Assembly: GCA_024704765.1 (NCBI GenBank)
Contig: JAKMXF010000111.1
Span: forward strand, 186,001 to 250,000
Origin: Oopsacas minuta
Lineage: Eukaryota; Animalia; Porifera
Direction of reading: 5' to 3'
Length of the DNA stretch: 64,000 bases
A program made the translations under genes and the position numbers. Below are positions 28,274-46,068 of this stretch, piece by piece (within the stretch, counting starts at the first letter, position 1; each line of letters opens with the position of its first letter). The notes below the pieces were generated by a model, which was not told the origin of the DNA, made no database searches, and saw only the letters and a program-made list of their open reading frames with translations.

Positions 28274-31200
28274 ATGGCTGCATACCCAAGTTATTACCCA
28301 AGCTATTACCCAAACAATTACTCATCAATTCCTCCTTATGGAGTACAACAACCTATGAATCAATACTCCTACCCAATGTACCCAAATAACCCAGGTTACT
28401 ACTCACAACATCCTCAACAACCAATGGCTTATACGCCTTATCAACAGCCAAATGTAATACTATTCTATGATGATGATAAACCTTATTATGAGTTGACAAA
28501 TTTCGCGAGGATTGGATTCAGTTTAGATGGAGATTATTGGCCAACTTCAGAGCATTATTTTCAAGCGCAGAAGTTTGAAGGCTATCCTTACATGAAGGCG
28601 GAAGTGCGGAAGTTGGCAAGTCCCAGAGATGCTTTTGATTATGTACGGAAACCGGAGAATAAATCTGTAAGTTTTTATCTAAGTTGTATAATACGTCTTT
28701 CAAATGAAGACGTATTACGTATAATACGTATTTGATAGTACGAATTATACGTTCAATCAACTATTTTTGGTGACGTAATTTCTATTAGGATAATTTCTGC
28801 AATTAGGAATATCTACATTACAAAGTTAGACCATGGATTTTAAGGAAATTTTACTTCACTTCATATTCAATTGAAAACTAATTCTTGACGAGCAACAAAC
28901 TAACTGACTAACTAACAAACAAATAGGCAAATACACAAGTAAACAAACGACCAAATATACTCATTCCAATCCAATATTATTCTTGTATGTATTTTAGTTA
29001 ATACGTAAAGATTGGCCATCAGTGAAAGAAGAAATAATGTACAAAGCATTGAAAGCTAAATTCACACAGAACACAGATATACTAACTAAACTATTGAATA
29101 CGAATGATTGTATGTTAGTTGAAGATTCTCCTCATGATATGTATTGGGGAAATGGAGCTGATAAGAAAGGTTTGGATTTGCTTATATTTACAAATTTCCA
29201 TATAAGGAATTTCAGTTATTCGGAGCTGAGCTCATTGTTAGAATTATATCACATGCTCCATAGAAAATTTTGGGTCTTTCGTTCTCATTGCACTGTTCCC
29301 TAGTTACCTTACCTGTACAATGGAATTTACTCGGTCCAATCATTACAGCAGGATTAGTATATAATGTCATTGGCTAATCCTGTTGTATTTATAAGAAAAA
29401 TATTCGTTTTCGCAATAATGACAAAAATTGTAATATTCATGCGGTAGCCAGATCAGATGCAGGCGGTTGAGCTGAAGCATGTTTCCAACTAACAGTGGCC
29501 TAAACAGAATCCTATTATACCTGAGAAGGTTGTTGAACTTCCTAACAACTTGAATATTCACGGGGGGAATTCAAGTTGATAGGAAGTTCATTTCATTGAC
29601 TGTGACTAATTGTACTTGTTTTTCAGGTAAAAATCGTCTCGGAGAGCTGTTAATGAAACTCCGTACAGAGTTACGTCACAATCCACTTCTATCTCCATCT
29701 GCTCCATTATACCACCTTACTACAGATAATATACAAAACCCCTCTCCGCGGCATGAACCATTGAAACGAAGCAAATCATTAAACCATTTAAATACCCATT
29801 TATCTTCTAATATAATGGATGATGATGAGGTGATTTATGACGTCAGTGATTCCAATCATTTCCTGTCTAATTCATTTAAAGCTTCTTTCAAATTGCAAGG
29901 AAAGAAATGGCCAACTGTATTGCATTATTTTGTAGCTAGGAAGTTTAATATGAAGAAAAAGCATGTAGGGAAGATATTAGATATGACAGATGCTAAAGAT
30001 ATACATTTTCATTCGAGGAATTCTAAATATAAAACTGTGAGTTTTGTGAAAGTATTTTGTACAATTTTTCATCAATTCTATGGCATTCAGACCCGCTTAA
30101 TAGGGTCACTTAACCTCAATGCAAATACAGTTAACTCCCGTTATAACGAAGCTCAAGAGACCGCGAATATTACTTCGATATAACCGATAACATATATGTT
30201 ACTTTGACTTTTTTGGGACCATATTTGTACAATTAAGACCTCGATATAAGTTGGAGTTGACTGTATTTTCAAATCTAATTATTTTATCATCTACTGTAGG
30301 ATATTGATATATACTGGAATATAGACAAGAAAGGAATAATGAAGGAGGCTTTGAAAGCTAAATTTGAACAGAATATAATTCTTAAACAGAAACTACTTGA
30401 TACAGAGGGTAAAGATATAATAGAGAGAGCTGTAGATGATTCTTATTGGAGTCAATTAGCAAGTGGAACAGGTTAATATTGTATGAAGCACTAAGATAAG
30501 CTCGGGGCAGCATCCGAAGATCCTGATAATTCCGTAGACCTCTGGACCGCCCGTGCTCGGATATTTTCTTGCTCCCAGGTGGATTGCGACACCTATCCAT
30601 CTCATTATAAATATGTGATTCTATTTTCTTAATATACTACTATCTATTGTAGGTCACAATATAATGGGACAACTTCTATGTCAAGTACGTACAGAATTAA
30701 ACACCCACCCTTCTGCCTCTCCTAAACTTTATTCACAATCCCCATCACGTCGTGGCACTGATATTATTCCTGGATTAAATACTCCTAAGACACTGAGCCC
30801 CTACTCCTCATCTAACAAAATCAACCCAGCCAATAGTCTTCCTATTGGTGGGAATATATTATCACACTCTCACTCCCCGTGTATTTCAAGTAACTCTCTA
30901 CGCAATGAACATAATCAACATACGATGGATAGATTATCAAACGATATATCTAATACTCTTCAAATCCCTCATACTATTAATTTCACAGATACAAATAATT
31001 TGAAACAATTTTACCAGTTTTCAACTTTCTCAAATATTGGTTTTAATCTTGATGGACATTATTGGCGATCAGTTCAGCATTATTTTCAAGCACAGAAATT
31101 CATGTATCATCGAACATTAATGGATAAGATTAGATTGGAAGTGACTTCAACACGTGCATTTGAAATTGGAACCGACAAAGCTAATAAATCTGTAAGTTCT

Positions 31201-33458
31201 ATTGTTATCCTTTGGTTAGGAATTCGGTTGATTCGTTATTGTAATTCTCAAACGGGGATTAGTATGTAATTTGCGAAATATTAATCAATTTTACTACAGT
31301 AAACCCCGGTTATATCGAAGATCAAAGAACCGCGATAATTACCTCGATATAAACGATGAGATATAAGTCGCTTTGAAGGTTTGGGACTATATTTGTACAA
31401 TTTCATACTTCGATATATTCGTTTTCGATATAAAGGGATTCGACTGTGTGTAATATTTGCATTTACTTTGAAATAAGAATTATTATATGTGAAAACATGT
31501 TCGTACACTCATAGATGGAATAATTTATAAACAATGCTGGATGAACTTGAAAATCGAAAAGCAAGAATTAACGAACTTAAATATCAGTATTGTATACTTT
31601 ATCTACTGTAGTATATTGTGAAGAATTGGGAATCTATTAAAGAAGAAGTAATGTTCAAGGCTTTAATAGCGAAATTCAAAGCTTCGGCTCTGAAAAAATT
31701 ATTACTTGATACAGGTGATAAGGTAATTATTAATGAGTCTACAGTTGATTTTTGGGGATCTGGTAAAGATGGAAAAGGTTAGTTGCACACTTAGTTTTTA
31801 TTTTGTTATTTACATTATTTCCTTGGGAATGAGAATCGTTTTCTTTCTATGAGAATTAGAGCCGTAGAGGTTGCTGACAGTAGCACCTGGGTTGCCAACA
31901 ATCCCTTAGCGCGCATATGTTTGTAATTCCCACCGAAATCCTGTATGAATGTGACGGGAATCGGAATTGAATTCTGATCACACAGAAAGCCTTGTTATTT
32001 ATGTATTTATTGCATGTTTGTTTGTATATTCTATTTCTAGGGAAGAATAAGCTTGGACATTTGTTAATGAAAGTCCGTACAGAACTTCAATCCAACCCTG
32101 CCTACGAACGGAATCACTCAAACAGTTCTTATTCACCACAAAATGACAAATTATTTGGTTTATCATCTAACCGTGACGTCATAGAGTTCTATGATGAACA
32201 CAAACCTTATTTTGGGTTTACTCCATATTCTATGGATAATGTTCGACTCGATGGTGTTCTGTGGCGAACTCTAAATCACTACTTCCAAGCTCAAAAATTC
32301 CCTCATGATGTTCATAGGGAAAAAATTAATGACTATATTACACCGCAGAAAGCTACATACGCAGCTAAAGTAGAGCTTAAGAAGGTTTGGCTATATACAT
32401 TAGAATAGAGCTAAGCGATCACAATACAACACGAACACGAACCGTATGTTTCGTATTCCATTTCGGTATTTCATGTTTCATGTTCGTGTTTCCCCTTGCA
32501 CACTTGGCAACACGTACGCGGGTCAGGGAAACGGAGCAAGTATTCAATACAGTATTCCTTAGGGAATCATGCTTCCCCAAACATCACACTGGTTATTACC
32601 ATTCCAGTTGTATCTTTGAGAAAATTTCACACCATTTTCTTTCAAGCTACAAAATTTGTTCAAAGATTTTCTATTTATAGTGTTTGAAATAATTTATATA
32701 ACTTTTTCTCTAGCATGCTATATCTCTGACTTCTTCAGAAAAAGAAATAATCATGGTGAGAGGCTTAGGAGCAAAGTTTACACAACATCCAGATCTTAGA
32801 AAAGCACTAATCAATACTGGCACAAGAGAACTCTTATTTATACATCCAATGGATTTTATTTGGGGTACAGGAGGATCTAGTGGTTTGTGATTTTAATTTC
32901 CTTAAGGTTATGGTACAATATAGTATAAGCAGACGTCATTATCTTAATTTTTGTTTTGATGTAATATTAGAAAATCAATACCAAAATGATGGTGAATTAC
33001 CTCAAAACATAATTTCGAGTATTTATAATCTGCAGTCGCGGTCCCAGGCCGAGAGTTTGACAATTGGGGCATTTGGCCTGATTTGAAAATCCTGGCCCTG
33101 GGTTTGCCAGATCCTGGGACTGCCCCTGAATCTAAGTGTATATTCCTGATTTCTACCTTGTATCAAAAAACTGTCTATAATATTATTCGTTACTCTACTT
33201 TACGAATATATATTCAATTGTTTAGGCGAGAACAAACTTGGAGTGCTATTAATGAAGCTACGTAGCAAACTTGCAAATACCACACCTACATCACCCATAC
33301 GCAATTCAACATATTCTCCACGATTATATTCCCAACCATTCTCATCAGATGACGAACAAAAAACTTACCACGACAGGGAAGTTAATATTTATAATTCGAA
33401 ATCTGAGAGAGATAAAATACGAATGCCACCATCTCCAGGTAAAAAAACATTTAAATAG
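28274..33458 (+). CDS. Multi-NADAR (YbiA/DUF1768) protein A: Y/P/Q-rich N-terminus + 4 tandem NADAR domains, 9 coding exons
   Basis: Exons 28274-28666, 28998-29169, 29627-30036, 30300-30471, 30653-31191, 31612-31777, 32041-32384, 32714-32882, 33226-33458. All introns GT-AG, all phases consistent. Repeat 1 reads WPTSEHYFQAQKF...DWPSVKEEIMYKALKAKF...EDSPHDMYWGNG...GKNRLGELLMKLR. Confidence 0.85.
30128..30263. mobile_element. Family A MITE in an intron of NADAR gene A
   Basis: TA-CAGTTAACTCCCGTTATAACGAAGCTC...GGAGTTGACTG-TA. Confidence 0.7.
31297..31446. mobile_element. Family A MITE in an intron of NADAR gene A
   Basis: TA-CAGTAAACCCCGGTTATATCGAAG...GGATTCGACTG. Confidence 0.65.
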
Positions 33459-34295
33459 CTTTCACACTTGGAAACCATATGACGAACCTTTTATCACTAA
33501 GCTATTTTCTATAGTTACTCCCCGAAAGAAACCTTGGCTTCTATTCGTAATGCTATTCTTATTTCTATTGGCGTTTTTGTTTGAATTTCAACCTATTGAT
33601 TTGTAGTGATAAGTTTTTACCAAATTCATTCTGTTGATGATACAATCAGTTATATTCTGTCTTATCAGGGCAGAGGGTGATATTGTCAATTATTTAGATC
33701 AATATCGATAAATATCGTATTCAATTACGTACAGAAATCCTCTGTCGTTCGCTAGGGTTACGTTCCTGAATTTTTGACATACTTGTATATTTATCTACGA
33801 TTTCATGATACTATTTGAGGTTCAAATGCTGTCATGACCACTCCCAGGTCATTCTGGATGTTTAATCAAAGCGGCCATATAACTTTAACCCCCTGTTTTT
33901 CCAGATCAGTGTAATAACCATAGCCGTCGGGGAAGCGTAAGGAATGAATATTGATAAATTAGAAGGCAACATATTCACAGTTCCTCCACATAACTCTGTT
34001 TATCATCTATGCTACCAGGATGCTCTGAATGTGATTGCTTCCTCAAAAGTGAGATTCTGATCCTGGTTTGTTGAAAGGGTGGGGGTGAGCTTGAGCATTG
34101 GGAGAAATTTTAGAGTTGTCTGAAATCTGGGGTAATTGCCATGTGTATAATAATTCCACAGAATTCCCTTACTCACCGGACACTCAACCATCTGGCTCCT
34201 CTGCTTGATACTCCCAAATACCCAATACAATTGAATGGAGTTTTTTTACTTTTCTAATCACTCAATTCTAACCCAATATTTCAATTAGCTTTTCA

Positions 34296-36684
34296 ATGGC
34301 TTCCTTATTCCATCCAGAACTTATCAACACGATATACTACGAGTGTAGCGATGAGAGTAATTTCCTATCTAATTTCTTTCCATCTACTTTCTCTCTCTCT
34401 GGACATTCATGGCCTACAGTACTGCATTACTTTATAGCTAGGAAGTTTGGCTTGAAAGAGAAACATTTGAATGATATATTACTCATGACTGTTACTCTAG
34501 ATGTACATTTATATTCTAGAGACCCGAAGAACCAAACTGTAAGTTTGTGTCGTATACATTTCCCCGAATTAGTGAACTTAATTTGGGAATAATATAATGT
34601 GATAATGTGGGATTATTTTCATTTATCAGAGAAGTAACATTGCGATTCCATCACGGTTGCCATGGGAATGGAATTTCAATTCCAATTCTCATCCCGTTCT
34701 CACGGCAACCCTGAATTCTACTGAACTTTTTTTGGGATTCTTTATTCCTGTATTACAGGTGTGATATTTTCCCAAAGAATTCACAGTCTTGTTTCTTCTA
34801 TAAATATGCTAATTATTGATAATAGAGAACAGTATCAATTATTACAGTGGAGTTCGCCTATTAGCGAATAATATTTTGCATGAATTTCCCTGTTAATGTG
34901 CGAACACTACTGTGTGCTCTTCAATAATTTCTTATCTTAGGATGTTATTCCGAGTTGGAATTTAGAGAAGAAAGGAATAATGAAGGAGGCTTTGAAAGCT
35001 AAATTTGAACAGAATATAATTCTTAAACAGAAACTACTTGATACAGAGGGTAAAGATATAATAGAGAGAGCTGTAGATGATTCTTATTGGAGTCAATTAG
35101 CTAGTGGAACAGGTATATACGGGATATTATCATAATTTTCTAAGGCCACTGTTTATGAGAAATTGTTTCATCTCGACATGAGATCCATCTGAGTATGCAT
35201 TCATGTGGGAAGGCGGCTCATTATAATTATCTAATTATTTTGTGACATATCAGCGAGAAAATTCATTCATTCATAGAATAATTAATAAATGACTAAAGTC
35301 AAATTTGATTCAGAATATGCTAGACGAACTCTGTAGCTGAATAACATAGAGTAAATAGTGAAATAATGGCCATATTCGTGCGGTAGCCAAATCAGATGTG
35401 TGCGTTCGAGCTGAAACAACATGTTTCCAACTAACAGTGGCCTAAACGAATTTGTATTCGTATATGGGGTCCACGGGTGAAGAGGGTGAGAACCTCTGGA
35501 TTAACCAATGTCACTGCTAAAACAAAATTCATTGTATCGAATATCTAGTGATTTTATTGTAGTCTAATTTCTCCGAACTTCAATATCTCCAGGGCATAAT
35601 CATATGGGGAAGCTCTTAACTAAAGTACGCTCACAACTGAAGACACCTCCCAGACGACTCATTACCTCACAGCTGATCAAACCCAATACCGTTACTAAGC
35701 CTACCCCACGAACACCAACACATCAACCGATAACCTTAAATACTCCTCAAACAGTAATACATGAATCCAAGTATATGCCAGTAATGCAATCATCACAAAC
35801 ACCAATCAGAAATTTAACTTATAAACTAGCAAGTCAAAAATTGACATCTTCCCCAACCACAAACTCTATCATAATCCCTTGTGGAAAGTATAAAGAATTC
35901 TCACTTTTATCGATTCAACCATTTGCCCTAGAAGGACATCATTGGTGGTCTGTCCAGCATTATTATCAAACGCAGAAGTACCCGAATTGTCCTCTTGTAG
36001 TTGATCAGATATTGAAGACTGCTTCTCCGGAAGCTGCTTTCAAAATTGGTACTGATAGGAAGAATTCACATGTAAGTTTTATTGATAAATTTAAAGGTCA
36101 TTTCCCCCTCCAACAACTCGATGGCTGACTCTAAATGACGTATAACTACATACCGCACATTTAACAGGTCTTGGGGACTGCTACCTGCACTTTAATACGA
36201 ACTAACCAAATTTACACTTTACCTGTTTACATACTAATAATATTCTGGCTAACTTTTACCGGATTTTCGATATGCCATTTCCGTTATTTTTATTTAACTT
36301 TTATAAAAATCTACGTCTATATATGTAGCTGATGGTGGAAAACTGGGATTCTATCAGGGAAGGAGTAATGCTGAAAGCTTTGAGAGCTAAATTCTGTGAT
36401 GATCCTTTGAGGACTTTATTACTCAGCACTGAAAACAAAAATATTATTAACAACAATGGGAATGAGTTTTGGGGTACTGGTAAAGATGGAAATGGTAAAA
36501 TATTTGTTTTAGTTTGATTGTTTTGTGTGTTTATTTGTTTGTGTGATTGTTTTGTTGTTGTTTGTTCCTTTATTGGCTGGTTTATCATATATACATTTCT
36601 CACTTTTCTACTTTTCTAGGACAAAACAAACTTGGCAATTTGTTAATGAAAGTCCGTGATGAGATGAAAAGAACTGGATTTTGA
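34296..36684 (+). CDS. Multi-NADAR protein B: 2 tandem NADAR domains, 5 exons
   Basis: Exons 34296-34538, 34941-35112, 35593-36071, 36329-36494, 36620-36684 (TGA 36682). Motifs WPTVLHYFIARKF, MKEALKAKF, WWSVQHYYQTQKY and GQNKLGNLLMKVR. Confidence 0.8.
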
Positions 36685-36953
36685 GAATTATGAATTTTAC
36701 TTTGATATTTAGCAGACACATTTCTTAATAATTTTTCCGATATTTTCTAACTTATTTACTTTATATTTCCCATACATTATATAATATATTATTTGATAGT
36801 CCTTTAAAATGTGACTTAAAATTTTGTTTTCATATCTGATACTCTATCAAATAATTCACTTCCTCAATATTATATTTACAGATTCCTTATATATATATAG
36901 CTCAACTATAGCATAGTACAGTTTTTTGTAATACAAAACCCCATACCCTCATT

Positions 36954-37300
36954 CATAGGCGTAAAGTCTGGGGGCCGGGGGGGCTGTCCCCCCCAGTTTT
37001 TTGACAAGATTTTGTGGATTCTACTTCAATTTTGTTATCTCTTTTGTAGATTAGTCTTTGCTAATTATCTTAGGTACTGAATACTTCTAAGTATAATACT
37101 ATTCCTCTTTGTTATGGCAGAACAATGCAGCGCCGTAACTTGTTCGGACCTAAGCCATCCATTTACTTAGAGATTGCAATAGACTAATAGTAGAAAATTA
37201 TATGTTTGAGTTAGTTACGGTTAATCATGTGCTAACGTATGTTGTATTCACGCCCCGCCCCCCCAGATTTGTGACTTTTGGACAAAACTTTACGCCTATG
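36954..37300. mobile_element. Non-autonomous hAT element
   Basis: Perfect 14-bp TIR CATAGGCGTAAAGT and perfect 8-bp target-site duplication CCCTCATT (36946-36953 and 37301-37308). Confidence 0.88.
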
Positions 37301-37462
37301 CCCTCATTCCAAAAGGTGACTTTCATTAGGCTTCAAATGACCTTTCCTCGAATATAGAAAAGCTAATACACAAAAACTGTCCTATCGTATAGTTGAGCTA
37401 TGTATAAGTTATTTGATATTTTTAATGAGTTATGATTTCCTTAACTTCTAGTTATAATTAGC

Positions 37463-40400
37463 ATGGCTGAGATACATCCAGAACATAACCCTCTACTACA
37501 CGCTACTTCTGCTCCCAATTGGATGGAATCAGAATTGGATTATAATAATGCTATTTCTTTCGGTAGAACTATGCATGAATATTTTGGGTTTACTCCTTTC
37601 TCACAGGTTAGTGAAAATTATCCTACATTCCTTAAATACAGTTAAACTTGTCTATAACGGCCACAAAAGGGACTAACCAAAAGTGGCCGCTTTTAAGAGG
37701 TTGACCATTATACATTAGTAACTTTATATTAATGGTGGTGATAGAGAAGTTGGCTTTTAAGACAAGTGGCCGATATTTATGATAATATAGTGGAAGTAGT
37801 TACTGGTAGCCATACAAGGGACTTGTCAAATGTAGACCTTATGGGAGGCGACCACTATATAAAGTGGCCGTTATAGACAGGCTTAGCGTCAGTAAGGGAA
37901 AAAAAATGGTGGCCGCTGGCCGCGTTGAGCAGCTGGCACTATACAGATATCATTATAATGGGAAATCGGAGGGGACTGTTTTAGGTGGCTGCTATGTATA
38001 GGTGACTGTTATACAGAGGTGGTCCTTAAGCAGGTTTGACTGTATCGTAAAAGGTATTACCAACTCGTGTATTCTCGCATGCCACAAGCTTGAAAAGTTA
38101 ATATTAAAAGTCTAAAGTTCTTGACAAAGTTCATGGTTCATGCAATGTCAAAACTGTGAACTTTGTTCACGATCTGTCAACAATTGTTGATACTTAGGAT
38201 AAGAAGTACCGTAGTTTCACCGAAGTACAAATTTTGAATGTCGTATTAACCAGAGTAATATCAATTGAATCGTAGGGACCTTATTTTGTGGAATTTTTTG
38301 TTTGTCTTATCCGGAAATTCATATTTATCGTGTTTGTATTAATACGAACACGCTTAAGAGGTAACTCCGGATAAGGAGTACAAACCTTGGCAGCCCCCTG
38401 GTGTACGTATTAACGAGATTTCCCTGCAAGTATTTTCAAATAAAATTTGAAATTCAGGGAAAAATTAAAATCTCGGAGTTTCCAGAAAAATATCCCAGAA
38501 AAAAGTTAGAAAGTGAGTGTTAATCCATAGCAAATAGGCAAAAAGCGAATGGCCACTATATTATCGTTCTAATCTCTAGCATGCTTTTAATCTTGAAGAT
38601 GCCTACTGGCTTACAATGGAACACTACATGCAAGCGAAGAAATTTATTGGACATCCTACTAAAATAGATGACATAAAGAACATAAAAAAACCTGAAGAAA
38701 TTGCTCATTATACGAATGATCCAGAAAATTCAAGGGTGAGTTTATTAAGCTATAAAGCAAGGTTGCAACCGAATATTATCAGTATTCGGTTAGGCTACTA
38801 TTCATGAATACTGATATTCAGTTTGAGCGGTTTCAACCTTACTATAAAGATCCTTAGACATTTGTATTACAGACCGTGACGTGATGTTATATTGGAATTC
38901 CTTTGTATTTAACCATGGATGGCGAGTTTCGTATAATTTATGTTTTATACAAATCCCACCTTCAATCAAACTAGGGGTGCGTCAAAATTAGCTAGAACAA
39001 CATCCAAGCAGATAAATCTACCATCCATGGTTAAATATCTGGTATGTATAAGGGGACCATTTTCGTCATAACAACATTACCTTTTATGGAAGTAACTCTA
39101 GGTCCACATGATGTTCATCTAAACATGCTCGGCATTTCATTGTCATTTTCTCATTATTTTATGACTTATCATAATGCACAGTGGCCAATTCATGGAAATT
39201 TCAATTCCTCTACTTCAAAATTTCTAAGCGTGTTAAGTGAGGTCTGTTAAGATAGTTTCACCCGTTGGATAGTAATTATATTGTGTAGTTGAATTTCACT
39301 GAAAACTAGGTGAAGTACTGACAAATTCATACAGCAAGTAAACTGAATCTTTCCTTACATTTCCTATATCATATAGTTTATCAATGACGAATGGAACAAG
39401 CATAAGCATAAATACATGTACAGAGCGCTATATGCTAAGTTTATACAGAATGATAGTATATACGATCAGCTGATGTATACAGGAAATAAGTTCTTAATAT
39501 ATGATACTGATGAGGATAGAACATGGGGTATAGGATATGATAAATCAGGTATTGTTTGTCTGTTTGTATCAGTGTTGCCAGATTATGTACCTACAAAGTT
39601 CGTTTCATAATTTTGATAATTTTTGACAATATTCATGCTATTTTCATTATTTTTAATAAATCAATAGTTCACACCAAAGTCCATGGTTCATGTCTAGCTA
39701 TTACCAAAGCCTAAATCTATCTACTTTCCTTCGTTGTTCGTTTAATTGTCTGTCTGCTTCTATATTTACGTATTTGTTAATCTTTTTACTGTGCCGACTA
39801 CAGTAGAGTCTCCGGATAACGCACACGCTGGGGTTATCACTTCTGTCCGTTTTGGGAGACTTCACTGAAATACTAATACCTTTTGGTGAACAATTCAAAA
39901 TTCTCCTAGATTTAGCTTCCGCTTGTTAGATAGGGGCAAAGAGGACGTAGAATTTGATTTTAACATTTTTAATGTCTTTCTTTGCTAAAACGGATATTTA
40001 ATAGAAAAATATAGTTTCAATAATCCACCCAAATTAATTTGGTGAAATTTAAGTCGGCACAGACTGTGATTTGAGATTTTTCCTCCTATTTATACTTTTC
40101 TTACCATCTAGGCAAGAACTACCTAGGCCTACTACTATGCAATATCCGTACATACTTCCGTGCACACCCCAAACCATTAAGCCATTCTCCTCCACCAGAC
40201 TTTATTTACGACTTTATGAACCTTCCAGAAAACAGAATTATCATACCCAAACCCAAACCTTTGATCTCATACGAGGAAATATCAATTTCGCCTTTCCCAG
40301 AAGCAATAATCCATTTTGGCGATCATAGGAAAGATTATTATTATTTATGTAATGATTCTAATCACGGATTTGAGTTAGATGGGACAATTTGGTTAACTGT

Positions 40401-43400
40401 TACACACTATTATCTGACCAAGAAATTTGCAGGATTTCCTAATTTACAGAATACTATAGCTATGCTTGAAGATCCGATTCAAGCTAGAGAATTCGCAGCA
40501 ACTAAGAGAGAGGTTTGTTTGTATATAGTAGAGATCTGCTTATCGAACGATTTTCATTTGTCCTCTATTGAAATCTACTGTTTTGACAAATTTTTATTAG
40601 ATTTTAACCATGGATTGTAGATTTAGTATATTTTTGTGTTACGTGTATATATACAAATCTCACCCCTCAACCAAGTGAGGAGTGCCTCGAATTTTGGATT
40701 ATTATACTGGAGTGTATATCTCAGGAACAATGCACTTTTGGCAGAATGCTGAATTAGTGATTACAAAATATATAATTTGGTATATTTTGATAAAATGTTT
40801 GCTTCAATGTAATGTTGACATGTATTTATACAAATATGTAATACTTTCATTCGGCCAAAAGTGCATTGTTTCTGAGATATACACTCCAACACAATAATCC
40901 AAAACTCGTTTAACCAATCCATGGTCCAATAAAAAATACATGGTGTCCTTGCCTTAGTGTATTAGAATGCTATGCACTAGCTTATCAATAATTCTCCCTC
41001 TTCAGTTTACATTAACAGATTTTGACTGTAAGAAGGATAGTATAATGCAAAGAGCTCTATCAGCTAAATTTAGACAACAACAGTATCTATCTGATATGCT
41101 ACTTGCTACACAGCCTAGAAGACTAGTATTTGATTGTGATAAAGATGCTTATTGGGGAATAGGTCCTGATGCTAAAGGTTAGTTAAATAATTATGAAGTT
41201 CAGCAAGAACTACTTTGATTCCCGAGAATTACGTATTGAGCATTAAAAGAGGTGCATTCATGAATTAGGTAGCTGGATGTTCCATTTGATAAGAATGCAA
41301 ACACACATAGTTCACTCCCTTTACGAGAAAGTGGAGCGAGCGCTCCGTTTATGACATGTAGCGCACATCAGGAGCGCGTCTAAAATATGAAGATTTGAGC
41401 TCAATACAGTCAACTCACTTTTTTGTGAACACGAATATTTCAAAATGCCCACTTTGTATCGTAATATACAAATATGGTCCCAAAACCTTCAAAGTAACAT
41501 GTCTGCTCGGTTATTTCTATGTAATTATCGCGATCCCTTGAGCTTCGATATTATTATACTATTCACCAAATATCCCATTTCTCTACAGGAGTAAACCGTC
41601 TAGGTGTAATGCTATCTGACCTCCGTATGCGTATACAACCAGGAGGAATCTTACACAAACCTTTAGCATACAGTGATGATATCTACTTCTTCAATGCTGA
41701 TACAGACTATTTTGAATTTACCCCATACTCTATGCACAGAATACAATTAGATTATAAATACTGGCCAACTGTTAGCCATTATTTTCAAGCTCAGAAGTTC
41801 ACAGGGAAACCTGAGATAGTAACACAGATAGCAGCTTGTAATAGTGCTCAGTCTGCATGGGATATAGCACATGATGAGAAAAATATTATTGTGAGTTGTA
41901 TGTATCAAGTGGAACCGGTTTGTCGTCTACCCGTTGAAATTTCGCCGGCAGTTTGGAATTTACTAACATTTCGAGATACCTATATATAGTGGAACCTCGT
42001 TAATACGAACACAGTTGACACGAATTGCGGTAAAGACGAACGATTATTTACAGTTCCCTACAAAGTTCATTCGATTGATATTATTCCGGTTAATAATACG
42101 AATACAGCGACGAACTCAGCTTATATGGAAGTAATTATCGCGGTCCCTTGAGCTTTAGCATAACGGGAGTTGATTGTAGGTTAAAATATTTTTGCGAAAA
42201 TTATACATATTACAGTGGAACTTTGGAATTTCGGTTGCCCTTGGGACCGAAATTTATGGCCGTAATTCTGGAATATATCAATGTTAATATCTTTAGAAAC
42301 GGGACTCTGGCCGGAATATCGAGGTGGCGGTTAAGCGGGGTTCCACTATACATCACAGCAGAGGCGTAGCTAGCTTTTCCTCTTTGGGGTTGCCAGCAAC
42401 CGCCTAGCTATCCCTATGCATCACAGTCTGTCTGTCATTACTATTCTAAAATAATCAATTTCCAATTTATAGCTAATCCTCCTTCTAGCACATTCCAATG
42501 GGATTTCAGAATGCTCGTAATGAGATTATGCTTAAAGCAATGTCTGCTAAGATAGATCAGCATGAAGATGTAAGGAAGAAGCTAGAGAATACAGGCAATA
42601 GGAAATTATTATTTGCTGCACAGGATATTCATTGGGGAATAGGAAAAGATGCAAATGGTAAATATCACTTGTATAAGTAGATACTCGTTAGTATAATTAT
42701 CACCACAAGGGCTCTGTTATACGATAATGTTCGTCCTACACGATTATTAGTTGTCCAACCATGGATGGTGAATTTAGTCTTGTTGGAAGTTGTTCTAGGT
42801 CATTTCTGCGCTCATTTTGGAATTGAGTGGGTGGGCCTCTGTCGTTTATAGACGTACTAAACCCTATGGCATATGCATAGAGTATTCATTTTTTAACACA
42901 GCTAGGTATTCTAAGCGCGTCATTCAGCGGGGAATTGACGCGCTTTGAGGGAAACACAGCGCACGTAACGTAACATGGAATATAGAAATCCACTATCCAT
43001 GGTTTAATAGCTAATAATGAATAGGGGCCATTTTTATCAAAACCGACCGTCGAATTATATACTCGTCCCACAGGAGCTTCTAGCACTAGCCCAATTGTCA
43101 CTTTTGGGCCTCTTGACATTTCCTTCTAGGACATTCTACTAACTCCACTATTATATACTTATTAACCCCTTGCACAAATTTACCAGAATTTCTTGCTTTT
43201 TCACTCTATTACACCCGAAAATATATTTCCAAAATTTCCCCTGGGATATGAATTAAAATCCTGGGAGGTTTGGCGAGTACGTATGCAATTGGAACGAAAA
43301 TGTCGGTATCCAACAAAAATCCTGTCTGTGGTGTACATTCCAAGAAATTATCTATCAGCGCTGGACGCTCCTCTAGGCGTATGATTTTTGACGATATCAT

Positions 43401-46068
43401 GTTTAGGAGCTCAAATTGAGGATCTTTTTTGTATACTGTAACACTTATTTACTGACTTGGACGTATGAAAATTCAGAGGAGGAGCGTACACCGAATAACC
43501 TGTATAACTCCGTGGTTACTCTCCAATTTCAAATATATATTAGTATTATCACCCTAGCAACTATTCAAGATCTTAGGTATGCCTCTTCTAGGTAAAAATA
43601 CGATTGGTAAAATATTAATGGAAATCCGTAAGGGACTTGCAGCAGCAAAATCTAAGGAACTACCAGCTCCAATGATTCACAAGCCTTCACCAATGGCCCT
43701 TCCCACACAGACAATAGATACACCCACGGACAGTAGGAATACAATATACTTTTTCAGCGAAGCAGATCATCTATTTCCGCTCTCAAGTTTCTCAATAATT
43801 TCATTCCTGCTGAATGAATTGAAATATAAAACTTTGAGTCATTTCTTTCAATCTCAGAAATTCAAGTCTAACTCTGCAATACAAAGGAGTATTATTAATT
43901 CTATGACTCCGTTAGCTGCAGTGTCTATCGCGAAGGATAAATACGAGGTAGTGTGTAGTGATTAGGCTACTGTTAGTTGGAAACATGATCCAGCTGCACC
44001 GCCCGAATCTGATTTGTCTACCACACTAATATTGTGATTATTTCACCATTTCCTCAATGTATTCAGCTAAAAGGTGTATAAACTGGCTAGAGTACAATAG
44101 AAGTATCTTATTCATAGTCTAGCCTATTCTCATATCAAATTTGACTTCAGTAATTATAATATTTTTTATGAATGAAGTCAATGAACCAAACTTCCAGCTG
44201 ATACCGCACTAAATAATGAGATGATAATAATAAAGAACATCCCGCCCGCCCGCATGAATGTTCAGGTGTATTCAATGTAGAGCTGAAACAAGTTTCTCAT
44301 TAACAGTTGCCTAACATACAAAGAGAGAAAATAATACGGTATATATACGGCAGGGTTCCTCAAATTCTCATGGATTATCTATTACCTCACTTTTTCGTAC
44401 AGTTCCTATATGGAGACGTCTTAACGGCATGGCATAGACGATTTGCGACATCCATCCGTGCGGCTGTGCGAAATCTAGTTGTCGGATTAACATGAAAATT
44501 GGTATACATATACATTCTGGGTCGGAGATTTGCACCTCGGGTATGTATTTTTCTAAAGTGAATATTTCACACCTTTTGGTGATTAATCATATTTTCACGC
44601 CTTCCTGTGTAAATTCAAAATAATGTTAGAGATTAGGTTCCAATATGTTGTCAGTGGTGATTGGGTGCATAGGGTGAGATTTTGAGATTTTCAGAGCCTA
44701 AAAATACGAGTTCATTTATCATATGATTAATCATATTTTAACACCTTTTTGCATTTATTTCTAGTGATGCTAGAAAGTTCGTTTGAATTGTTAGTCAGGG
44801 AAAATCTATTAGGTTGATTTCAATTTTGATATTTTCACACCTTTTTTGCCGTTTTGACATATTGTAAAACTATAAATTTGTCAATTATATCCTCACTTCT
44901 CCTCAGGGGCCGGCGCCGACTATTAAAGCTTGTGTGTGTCCATCATAATGGATTGTGGGTGTCTGGACACCCAGGACGCCCACGGTGGCGTCGGCCCTGC
45001 TTCTGTATTTATTTATTACGTCATAATCCTATAGCATATTATGCCAGACTTCAACAAAAAGCGGAAAGAAATAATGGAATTAGGCTTACAGGTACGATTT
45101 AATCAAAACCCATCTCTTAAAGATTTGCTAATGAGTACAGAAGATAAGAACTTAGTATTAAATAACAAGAAGGATGAATATTGGGGAATTGGTGATGGAA
45201 CAGGTAAATAGATAAAAATTAAAATCAGGGTTAGAGTATAACCTGGGTTAAATAGGTTTAGCCTGGGCCAGTGGGTAAAACCCGATTTAAATCCGGTTTT
45301 ACTAGTTTAGCACGGGTTAATCAAACTATAGTATTACTTTTCCACCTTTTTGGAAACTCAATTTATTATTATTTAAAACATATATTTATTTGTAATGAGT
45401 GCTAAAATTCTGACAAAATAACGTCCGGTTTTAAGTCAATTGTACAATTACAGATCTTTATTTATGAAGACTTTGAATATTGTTTTACAGGTAAAAATTG
45501 TTTCGGCAAACTTTTAATGAAAATACGCGATCAATACGCTGCAATTCCTCTGCCAATATTCGACCCTAAAGCACCACTCCCCCTTACAACACTCCCAATA
45601 CTAGAAAGACATTTATATTCAGCCACAGCTACAACTCTCAGTCCTGAAACACGAGGGATTTCAAATCCTTTTTATCCTGGTATAGAAACCGCGGATTTCG
45701 CTAAAAGGCCTATGCCAATGCCTAGACATCCCAAAAGCACATTACTCGTACACCCAGAAACTGTGATAGCTGCTTCATATTGTGTAGATACAGAAAACAG
45801 TATAATAGTCGCGAAAAATTCCAAAGGCGATACGGTTTCCACGATTTGTAACACCTCAATAAAATTCCCTTGTAGTGTATGTGATGACGAAGAAAGCATC
45901 TACGTGTTATGCGCACCAAAGCTTGTGAAAATAAATAAATTCACAAATGAAAGCGTAAAAGAAGTTCCTTTGCAAATTCCACATAGTAAAATACGCGTTA
46001 CAACTGATGGTTTATCTGTAATTAATGGCGGATTAGAATCTGTTTATTCATTTGATCTTAAGAATTAG
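37463..46068 (+). CDS. Multi-NADAR protein C: 4 tandem NADAR domains + unrelated C-terminal tail, 10 exons
   Basis: Exons 37463-37606, 38580-38735, 39377-39548, 40112-40512, 41006-41177, 41589-41890, 42489-42657, 43592-43947, 45035-45203, 45491-46068, all phase-consistent. Motifs MEHYMQAKKF, VTHYYLTKKF, VSHYFQAQKF and LSHFFQSQKF, each followed by a xxWGIG and a GxNxxGxxL segment. Confidence 0.82.
37639..38042. mobile_element. TA-flanked pogo-like MITE with internal GTGGCCG repeats
   Basis: TA-CAGTTAAACTTG...CAGGTTTGACTG-TA, inside intron 1 of NADAR gene C. Confidence 0.7.
38913..39030. mobile_element. TTAA-flanked MITE (family E)
   Basis: TTAA-CCATGGATGG...CCATCCATGG-TTAA with perfect 10-bp TIR. 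A related longer copy lies at about 42757-43007. Confidence 0.75.
41407..41551. mobile_element. Family A MITE, reverse orientation, degenerate
   Basis: TA-CAGTCAACTC start; internal ATATGGTCCCAAA and TTATCGCGATCCCTTGAGCTTCGATA. Confidence 0.6.
42359..42418. mobile_element. 60-bp minimal hAT-type element
   Basis: Imperfect TIR CAGAGGCGTAGCTAG / CTAGCTATCCCTATG flanked by a perfect 8-bp duplication CATCACAG (42351-42358 and 42419-42426). Confidence 0.75.
44420..44815 (+). repeat. Interspersed repeat family B
   Basis: Homologous to 7051-7430 over about 350 bp. Confidence 0.7.

Follow-up and report, generated by a model that had tools for sequence, protein, structure and literature searches.

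Ten NADAR domains (PF08719) are encoded by the + strand of a 64-kb stretch of the genome of the glass sponge Oopsacas minuta (the window hereafter), where they occupy positions 28274-46068 and are distributed over three tandem spliced genes, g1, g2 and g3, that carry four (D1-D4), two (D5-D6) and four (D7-D10) domains, respectively. All ten domains keep the residues that contact ADP and pyrophosphate, and nine have lost one or both of the glutamates that hold the distal ribose, the complete catalytic set being found in D1 only. This pattern leads us to favour, tentatively, a reading in which the products of g1 and g3 would each consist of one head domain, active or semi-active, and of domains that only bind, the product of g2 would be a binder only, and one isoform of g1 would be anchored in a membrane.

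No enzymes other than NADARs are known to erase ADP-ribosylation from the bases of guanosine and cytidine in DNA and RNA (PMC11833690, PMC12945103), and most NADARs are single free-standing domains (Schuller et al., PMC11543638). Porifera are among the animals that bear NADARs, and the role of the family in animals is openly called unknown (Cihlova et al.; PMC11125620, PMC11833690). With ten natural variants of one fold in three expressed proteins, from which ribose-holding glutamates have been lost and in which ADP-binding residues have been kept, the locus makes testable the existence of a reader of nucleic-acid-base ADP-ribosylation, and the use of this mark, or defence against it, by early-branching animals.

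Organization of the array

The window spans positions 186001-250000 of contig C111 in an assembly of 61.46 Mb and 365 contigs (G000); the published O. minuta genome is described as about 61 Mb in 365 scaffolds with a G+C content of 36% (PMC10280926). A scan of both strands of the 64-kb window for H[YF]xQxQK[FY]-type motifs returned ten occurrences, all on the + strand between 28553 and 43840, and none outside this interval on either strand. Each NADAR domain is divided into three coding pieces: piece A ends with '...ENKS', piece B starts with '..DW..VKE.IM..AL.AKF' and ends with 'YWG.G..G', and piece C ('KN.LG.LLM..R') runs on into the linker and piece A of the next domain. Upon enumeration of all frame-compatible GT/GC-AG pairs, one junction, of the GT-AG type, was clearly best at each expected site. 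The assembled coding sequences of g1, g2 and g3 (2598, 1125 and 2619 nt, respectively) are all multiples of three with a terminal stop only, and code for products of 865, 374 and 872 residues in which two to four domains are joined by S/P/T-rich linkers. The 23 introns are without exception GT-AG and follow a 0,1,0,1 succession of phases in every domain; g3 has one extra phase-0 intron, inside D7.

Gene g1 (28274..33606, + strand), modelled from splice sites, the public model P0168, Pfam matches and sequencing-read joints, codes for D1-D4 after a Y/P/Q-rich N-terminal stretch. Its first eight exons lie at 28274-28666, 28998-29169, 29627-30036, 30300-30471, 30653-31191, 31612-31777, 32041-32384 and 32714-32882; its 3′ end is either a single last exon at 33226-33458, including the stop, in a putatively soluble form, or 33226-33438 plus 33515-33606, including the stop, in a putatively tail-anchored form. 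The N-terminus (28274-28453; about 60 residues) is of low complexity, rich in Y, P, Q and N (PSYYPSYYPNNY...) and without a Pfam match, and bears some likeness to prion-like or annexin-A7/A11-type N-termini. Gene g2 (34296..36684, + strand) codes for D5 and D6, which are paralogous to D2-D3 of g1, in exons at 34296-34538, 34941-35112, 35593-36071, 36329-36494 and 36620-36684. Gene g3 (37463..46068, + strand) codes for D7-D10 and a C-terminal tail of about 170 residues; its ten exons lie at 37463-37606, 38580-38735, 39377-39548, 40112-40512, 41006-41177, 41589-41890, 42489-42657, 43592-43947, 45035-45203 and 45491-46068. The g3 tail has no Pfam match and no recognised domain: its single-sequence AlphaFold model reaches a predicted local distance difference test (pLDDT) score of 36, an Atlas feature search gave a weak beta-propeller-like lead under the recognition threshold, and the genome holds one marginal match (E = 0.003).

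Automatic gene models of g1 and g2 already exist in GenBank. The g2 model is identical over all 374 residues (100%) to GenBank KAI6657309.1 (P0003, 'hypothetical protein LOD99_57 [Oopsacas minuta]'). The public model of g1, P0168 (918 residues), carries the GenBank name 'Riboflavin biosynthesis protein PYRR, chloroplastic-like'; it shares all internal junctions with our model and has the end in which a 76-nt intron is spliced, and differs from it by a start 29 residues further upstream, reached through an extra exon. No public model of g3 was found in profile and homologue searches of protein databases, and no record of public contigs encoding P0003 was found in a searched set that may leave out the window's own genome.

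The identity of the domains was assessed against the PF08719 gathering score of 35.1 bits. P0168 matches the profile over four stretches (359.7 bits for the whole product), NADAR being its sole Pfam domain, and P0003 over two (155.6 bits). Contiguous exons of g3 were scanned one at a time, and gave 56.3, 48.1, 34.2 and 48.6 bits for the B-exons and 22.5, 14.1, 21.9 and 28 bits for the A-exons. The structure of one of the ten domains, D6, which is among the most degenerate, was modelled with AlphaFold2 from a 57-row alignment (mean pLDDT 95.3); its only significant Foldseek matches are 2B3W (E. coli YbiA; template modelling score, TM, 0.83) and 8BAU (P. nicotianae NADAR with ADP-ribose; TM 0.77).

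Transcription, splicing and gene boundaries

A 10-kb genomic query retrieved four public sequencing runs, all from one sample and without an RNA label. Three of the four are DNA-like, their depth staying flat through the introns. In the fourth, X4, depth follows the exons (thousands on exons, 0-40 in introns), and this run alone has GT..AG joints; it is treated as RNA-derived for these two reasons. In the read check, which covered 32700-38699, X4 contains the GT..AG joints 32882>33226, 34538>34941, 35112>35593 and 37606>38580, the last of which backs intron 1 of g3, and its loose ends spell exon sequence over junctions 4A-4B, 2A-2B, 2B-2C and 6B-6C. Eight predicted junctions have X4 support; the g3 exons past 38.7 kb are modelled from splice sites and homology alone. 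Contig depth in X4, although a poor measure of expression, is about 2000 for g1, 8000 for g2, 1000 for g3 and 43 for the g1-g2 spacer, which argues for three transcription units: g1, g2 and g3 are three separately transcribed, spliced genes. An earlier note on this DNA had described ten NADAR domains in three tandem spliced genes (4+2+4), and this description is borne out by the motif scan, the in-frame GT-AG models, Pfam and the public models. Its expectation that the products match PF08719 holds above the cut-off for g1 (four stretches) and g2 (two stretches), the exons of g3 match the profile one by one with the scores given above, and the spliced transcripts that it anticipated are seen in the exon-shaped coverage of X4 and the eight junctions.

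Other gene boundaries were tried and rejected. A donor and acceptor at 33438>34318 could link g1 to g2 on the way to a single ten-domain gene, but X4 uses donor 33438 for the 76-nt intron. Read-through from g1 to g2 is disfavoured by a spacer depth of about 43 and by the lack of an inter-gene joint among the joints listed (eight others are unlisted), and splice enumeration gave no acceptable join for a fusion of g2 to g3.

The alternative 76-nt intron of g1 (33439..33514, + strand) is seen as a GT..AG joint in X4 only, where the spliced joint has a depth of 551 and the unspliced contig a depth of 550. When the intron is retained, g1 ends with ...PPSPGKKTFK; when it is removed, g1 ends with ...PPSPVTPRKKPWLLFVMLFLFLLAFLFEFQPIDL, the last 19-residue Kyte-Doolittle windows of which average 2.0-2.4. 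The spliced C-terminus is probably a hydrophobic, tail-anchor-like transmembrane segment that could target the protein to a membrane, and splicing of this intron would then set whether g1 is soluble or membrane tail-anchored.

In the DNA runs, the g2-g3 spacer (36900-37400) and part of g3 intron 1 (37700-38100) have a depth 5-50 times higher, with many variant joints, and contain high-copy repeats. A minor GT..AG joint in X4, 38512>38580, hints at an alternative upstream exon of g3.

Selective loss of ribose-holding glutamates

In the P. nicotianae NADAR, pyrophosphate is held by K50, R93, W89, D130 and W133, and the distal ribose by E43 and E125 (Schuller et al., PMC11543638). The equivalents of E43, K50 and E125 in the E. 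coli C7 NADAR (E88, K95 and D171) are needed for function; the E88Q variant is inactive, and the E88A variant comes close to the wild type in vitro yet does not work in vivo (PMC11543638). To map these positions onto the array, a sponge paralogue was aligned with 8BAU and 2B3W in HMMER, and an alignment of the domains was used alongside. The ADP and pyrophosphate contacts are retained almost throughout: the K50 and W133 equivalents are unchanged in all ten domains, the R93 position is occupied by K or R and the D130 position by D or E in each of them, and the W89 position by W or F in nine.

The two glutamates follow another course. The first (E43-equivalent) is kept in two domains only, D1 and D7, and is replaced by L in D2 and D5, Q in D3 and D6, N in D4, T in D8, and S in D9 and D10; the change to Q in D3 and D6 is the same as the inactivating E88Q of the E. 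coli C7 NADAR. The second (E125-equivalent, in the last beta-strand, the LVE of YbiA) is kept in three domains, D1, D2 and D5, and is replaced by N in D3 and D6, F in D4, D8 and D9, Y in D7 and L in D10. An Asp adjoins the lost Glu position in D7 and D8, and an Asp of the BC4488 type, two residues before the Glu position, is present in none of the ten aligned domains. The complete E/K/E set (E of EHY, K of QKF, E of LVE) is thereby found, by alignment and residue table, in D1 alone (28454..29673, + strand), and D7 keeps E and K. Changed cells amount to 15 of 20 at the two Glu positions vs. 21 of 210, mostly conservative, at 21 other family-conserved positions (Fisher p = 4e-10). This Glu-selective loss, combined with the retained contacts, indicates a pocket that retains its ADP-holding side and has selectively lost the side by which the scissile ribose is positioned. 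The earlier note had left a choice between a multivalent N-glycosidase and an ADP-ribose reader: the residue pattern fits the reader, whereas loss of the first Glu in eight domains and of the second in seven, which leaves only D1 with E/K/E, is evidence against a multivalent N-glycosidase.

The residue pattern can also be read as that of a multi-specific enzyme array, in which most or all of the ten domains would be active N-glycosidases, each tuned to another adduct (ADP-ribose on G, C or U bases, or another ribosyl N-glycoside). We consider this rather unlikely; it is nevertheless the main rival to binding-only domains, and only biochemistry separates the two. The near wild-type activity of E88A in vitro and a third acid that varies between E, D and H by subfamily speak for such an array (PMC11543638, PMC11125620), as do the Asp beside the lost Glu in D7 and D8, the inter-domain identity of 25-49% (D2/D5, at 66%, excepted), which fits diversified specificity, and the continuing emergence of new NADAR substrates such as cytidine-ADP-ribose (PMC12945103). 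It is harder to reconcile with the activity-abolishing E-to-Q change carried by D3 and D6, with the loss of both acids from D4, D8, D9 and D10, where N, T or S and F or L stand in their place, and with the confinement of the losses to two ribose-holding positions, the usual signature of a pseudoenzyme.

Genome context and the riboflavin question

The GenBank name of g1 invites comparison with YbiA and PyrR, and a role in metabolite damage control would have the array hydrolyse riboflavin intermediates or ribosylamines in the manner of these proteins, perhaps supplied by the dominant archaeal symbiont. D1 and its paralogues on contig C133 are indeed near YbiA (130 bits for C133b, a sponge paralogue, to 2B3W; 47-48% identity between D1 and the C133 copies), and GenBank labels g1 'Riboflavin biosynthesis protein PYRR-like'. 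However, profile searches found neither RibA (GTP cyclohydrolase II, PF00925) nor RibD_C (PF01872) in the genome, although the positive controls for PF01872 and PF00925 were found in 14 and 10 of 14 genomes, respectively. The riboflavin role known from YbiA and PyrR is therefore a poor fit, as is the GenBank name of g1, a misleading automatic transfer that the present analysis corrects. Neither the RibD-type fusion nor the riboflavin-making host of the plant PyrR type is seen here: P0168 contains NADAR only, the proteins hold no RibD-type domain, and nine of the ten domains are without the full catalytic set. Damage control is for these reasons very improbable, and the riboflavin-intermediate function entertained in the earlier note can largely be set aside on the absence of RibA and RibD_C from the genome.

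Since the riboflavin pathway is missing, ADP-ribose chemistry is the more likely field of action. The machinery for ADP-ribosylation is well represented in the genome, with at least 20 PARP-catalytic matches and three ART-like loci, alongside at least 26 NADAR matches at at least seven loci, several of them tandem arrays. DarT (PF14487) was not found, in a search that is uninformative because its control matched nowhere. The genes noted near the array are RasGAP and MED8 only, and a DarT-NADAR linkage is not seen among them.

This abundance of NADARs in a 61-Mb genome, with its several tandem arrays, also lends something to the idea of an immune decoy or sensor family, in which fast-evolving glass-sponge NADARs would bind ADP-ribosyltransferase toxins or viral factors by protein-protein contact rather than ADP-ribose adducts. 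The paralogues are strongly diverged and include a patch of gene conversion, and antitoxins of the DarG type bind their own toxin directly (PMC11125620). Such decoys appear improbable given that the ADP and pyrophosphate contacts, conserved in ten of ten domains, point to a nucleotide ligand and not to a protein surface, that the ratios of nonsynonymous to synonymous substitution rates (dN/dS) are below 1 and show no sign of positive selection at a coarse level, and that no toxin partner is encoded nearby.

History of the array

Two pairs of domains stand out by identity, D2/D5 (66%) and D3/D6 (49%), and both pairs are supported in the tree. D1 clusters with the C133 NADARs, which are canonical and YbiA-like and to which it is 47-48% identical; the remaining domains share 25-41% identity with one another, and all domains lie within 25-49% apart from D2/D5. 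The pairing of D2 with D5 and of D3 with D6 shows g2 and the D2-D3 segment of g1 to be duplicates. Within them, self-BLASTN revealed a patch in exon 2B (30315..30473, + strand) that matches exon 5B (34956-35114) with 98.1% DNA identity over 159 nt, whereas neighbouring exons are about 67% identical, and the two exons code for the same amino-acid sequence; a patch of this identity amid such flanks probably reflects gene conversion between g1 and g2. A two-exon block with phases 0,1 can be duplicated in tandem with the reading frame preserved, which explains the growth of the array. Its origin may thus be pictured as tandem duplication, in frame, of a NADAR block of this kind, and then a segmental duplication that left D2-D3 and D5-D6 as paralogous pairs.

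Purifying selection acts on D2/D5 and D3/D6, with dN/dS of 0.35 and 0.25, respectively; these ratios are rough because dS is saturated for D3/D6 (1.8), and both are clearly below 1. A reading in which D1 alone matters, the remaining nine domains being decaying, neutral relics, would account for the disappearance of catalytic residues from most domains and for the lack of detected orthologues in other species. Decay is nonetheless scarcely credible in view of frames that are intact over 2.1 thousand amino acids, 23 canonical introns in phase, retention of about 90% of the non-catalytic conserved positions, dN/dS of 0.25-0.35, a D6 that folds confidently, and transcription and splicing of all three genes.

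Proposed mode of action

Gene structure and residue pattern are solidly established, and from them we infer a function that is worded here with corresponding caution. The full set in D1, the partial set in D7 and the retained ADP contacts suggest a head followed by binders. The head domains, D1 (E/K/E) in g1 and D7 (E and K) in g3, would be hydrolase-competent or near-competent and of the YbiA type. In the three further domains of each of these two proteins, one or both of the glutamates that grip the distal ribose, at the site of the N-glycosidic cut, are lost, and the lysine, basic residue, aspartate and tryptophans that hold ADP and pyrophosphate are kept; such degenerate domains may serve as non-catalytic modules that bind ADP-ribose or an ADP-ribosyl-base. 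The binding modules could confer avidity for base-ADP-ribosylated RNA or DNA, or scan along it, while the head domain removes the adduct. The most plausible activity of D1 is to free the guanine or cytosine bases of DNA and RNA from ADP-ribose. As a product without a complete set, g2 would be a binder only. We know of no reader of base-linked ADP-ribose.

Several points weigh against these head and binding roles. The in-vitro activity of E88A and the variation of the third acidic residue (E, D or H) by subfamily mean that the degenerate domains could still be enzymes. No orthologue of the array was found in other species by homologue searches with P0003 and P0168 and by a metagenome scan, all limited by a length window and a word index. 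The RNA nature of X4 comes from its coverage and joints and not from its record, the g3 model beyond 38.7 kb follows splice-site and homology logic only, and the coarseness of contig depth and of the dN/dS ratios noted above counts on the same side.

In a wider and more doubtful form, glass sponges may have turned the NADAR fold into non-catalytic readers of base-linked ADP-ribose, strung like beads behind a single eraser, with a splice switch to the membrane and a reader-only companion in g2, and the same might hold in the four- to seven-domain NADARs of molluscs.

Related systems and other poly-NADAR proteins

The array shares fold and family with E. coli YbiA (2B3W), and all three residues of the YbiA subfamily (E, K and the E of the last strand) are retained in D1; YbiA itself consists of one independent domain of about 160 residues, whereas the sponge proteins have two to four domains, most of them without the catalytic glutamates, in a genome without the riboflavin pathway. 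With the P. nicotianae NADAR and the DarT1-associated antitoxins (8BAU; PMC11543638) it shares the pyrophosphate contacts of the ADP-ribose pocket. DarT1-NADARs are of the BC4488 type with its Asp, in contrast to the array domains, which are YbiA-type or acid-less, belong to multi-domain proteins and mostly are without the E43 and E125 equivalents. The nearest functional analogy may be that with PARP14 macro1-3 and coronavirus nsp3 Mac1-3, in which an ADP-ribose fold is repeated with one hydrolase copy and divergent binders (PMC13224862, PMC9503650), but the folds are unrelated and no transferase domain is attached in the sponge array.

When 1.84 billion representative proteins were searched exhaustively by profile, 36,663 NADAR proteins were returned, with multi-domain ones ranked at the top. 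The largest number of domains named here is seven, in Haliotis rufescens XP_048255699 (841.6 bits), and a second Haliotis locus was also found; Patella vulgata XP_055956278 has four. These mollusc poly-NADARs belong to another branch of the family (C222-like, with an EQY-type motif), show mixed retention of catalytic residues and are not orthologues of g1-g3. O. minuta itself has a second four-domain protein, LOD99_3823 (P0167; 883 residues), on contig C288 (436000-445999; 3874-7264 of that stretch), which likewise retains catalytic residues to a mixed degree, differs from g1-g3 in its intron positions and is not an orthologue. The C288 gene has an orthologue of its own, P0001 (927 residues, 54% identical), which is intron-free on a 3068-nt contig of run SRR2064712, which indicates that this contig is a transcript; the two share the catalytic pattern ENK/F, SHR/-, A(S)HK/F, EHK/Y. 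Further multi-NADAR proteins occur in a Simkania metagenome-assembled genome, a transcript of the dinoflagellate Crypthecodinium, a kinase-like protein of the fungus Collybiopsis and several metagenomic proteins.

The poly-NADAR architecture is thus scattered rather than unique. It recurs in sponges and molluscs, and full-text literature searches found no papers on tandem NADAR domains. The term 'lineage-specific' used in the earlier note therefore suits this particular array and not its architecture, which appears as proteins of three to seven NADAR domains in molluscs and, beyond them, at the second O. minuta locus, in the Simkania genome, in the dinoflagellate and in the fungus. Likewise, the statement that no poly-NADAR proteins had been described in animals stands for the literature, while the proteins themselves are public in databases, uncharacterised.

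Other NADAR fusions came to light. Contig C133 (641000-650999) has single-exon genes for proteins of 433 and 955 residues that combine repeated Cys-rich modules with a canonical YbiA-like NADAR (E/K/E intact). The database proteins P0203 and P0210 (about 1580 residues, from ENA and Logan contigs) join Rpb2-type RNA-polymerase domains to NADAR, and the eukprot transcript P0205 joins PARP catalytic, WGR and zinc-finger domains to NADAR.

Other features of the window

An intron repeat of about 60-125 nt, resembling a miniature inverted-repeat transposable element, is present in both orientations in g1 and g3 (30126-30248, 31295-31417, 41467-41551 and 42121-42187), its copies being 78-83% identical. 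A palindrome of 220 nt lies at 40688-40908. Finally, the segment 14001-18000 displays a strand asymmetry unlike the rest of the window, with a GC skew of -0.27 to -0.31 and an AT skew of +0.21 to +0.25.

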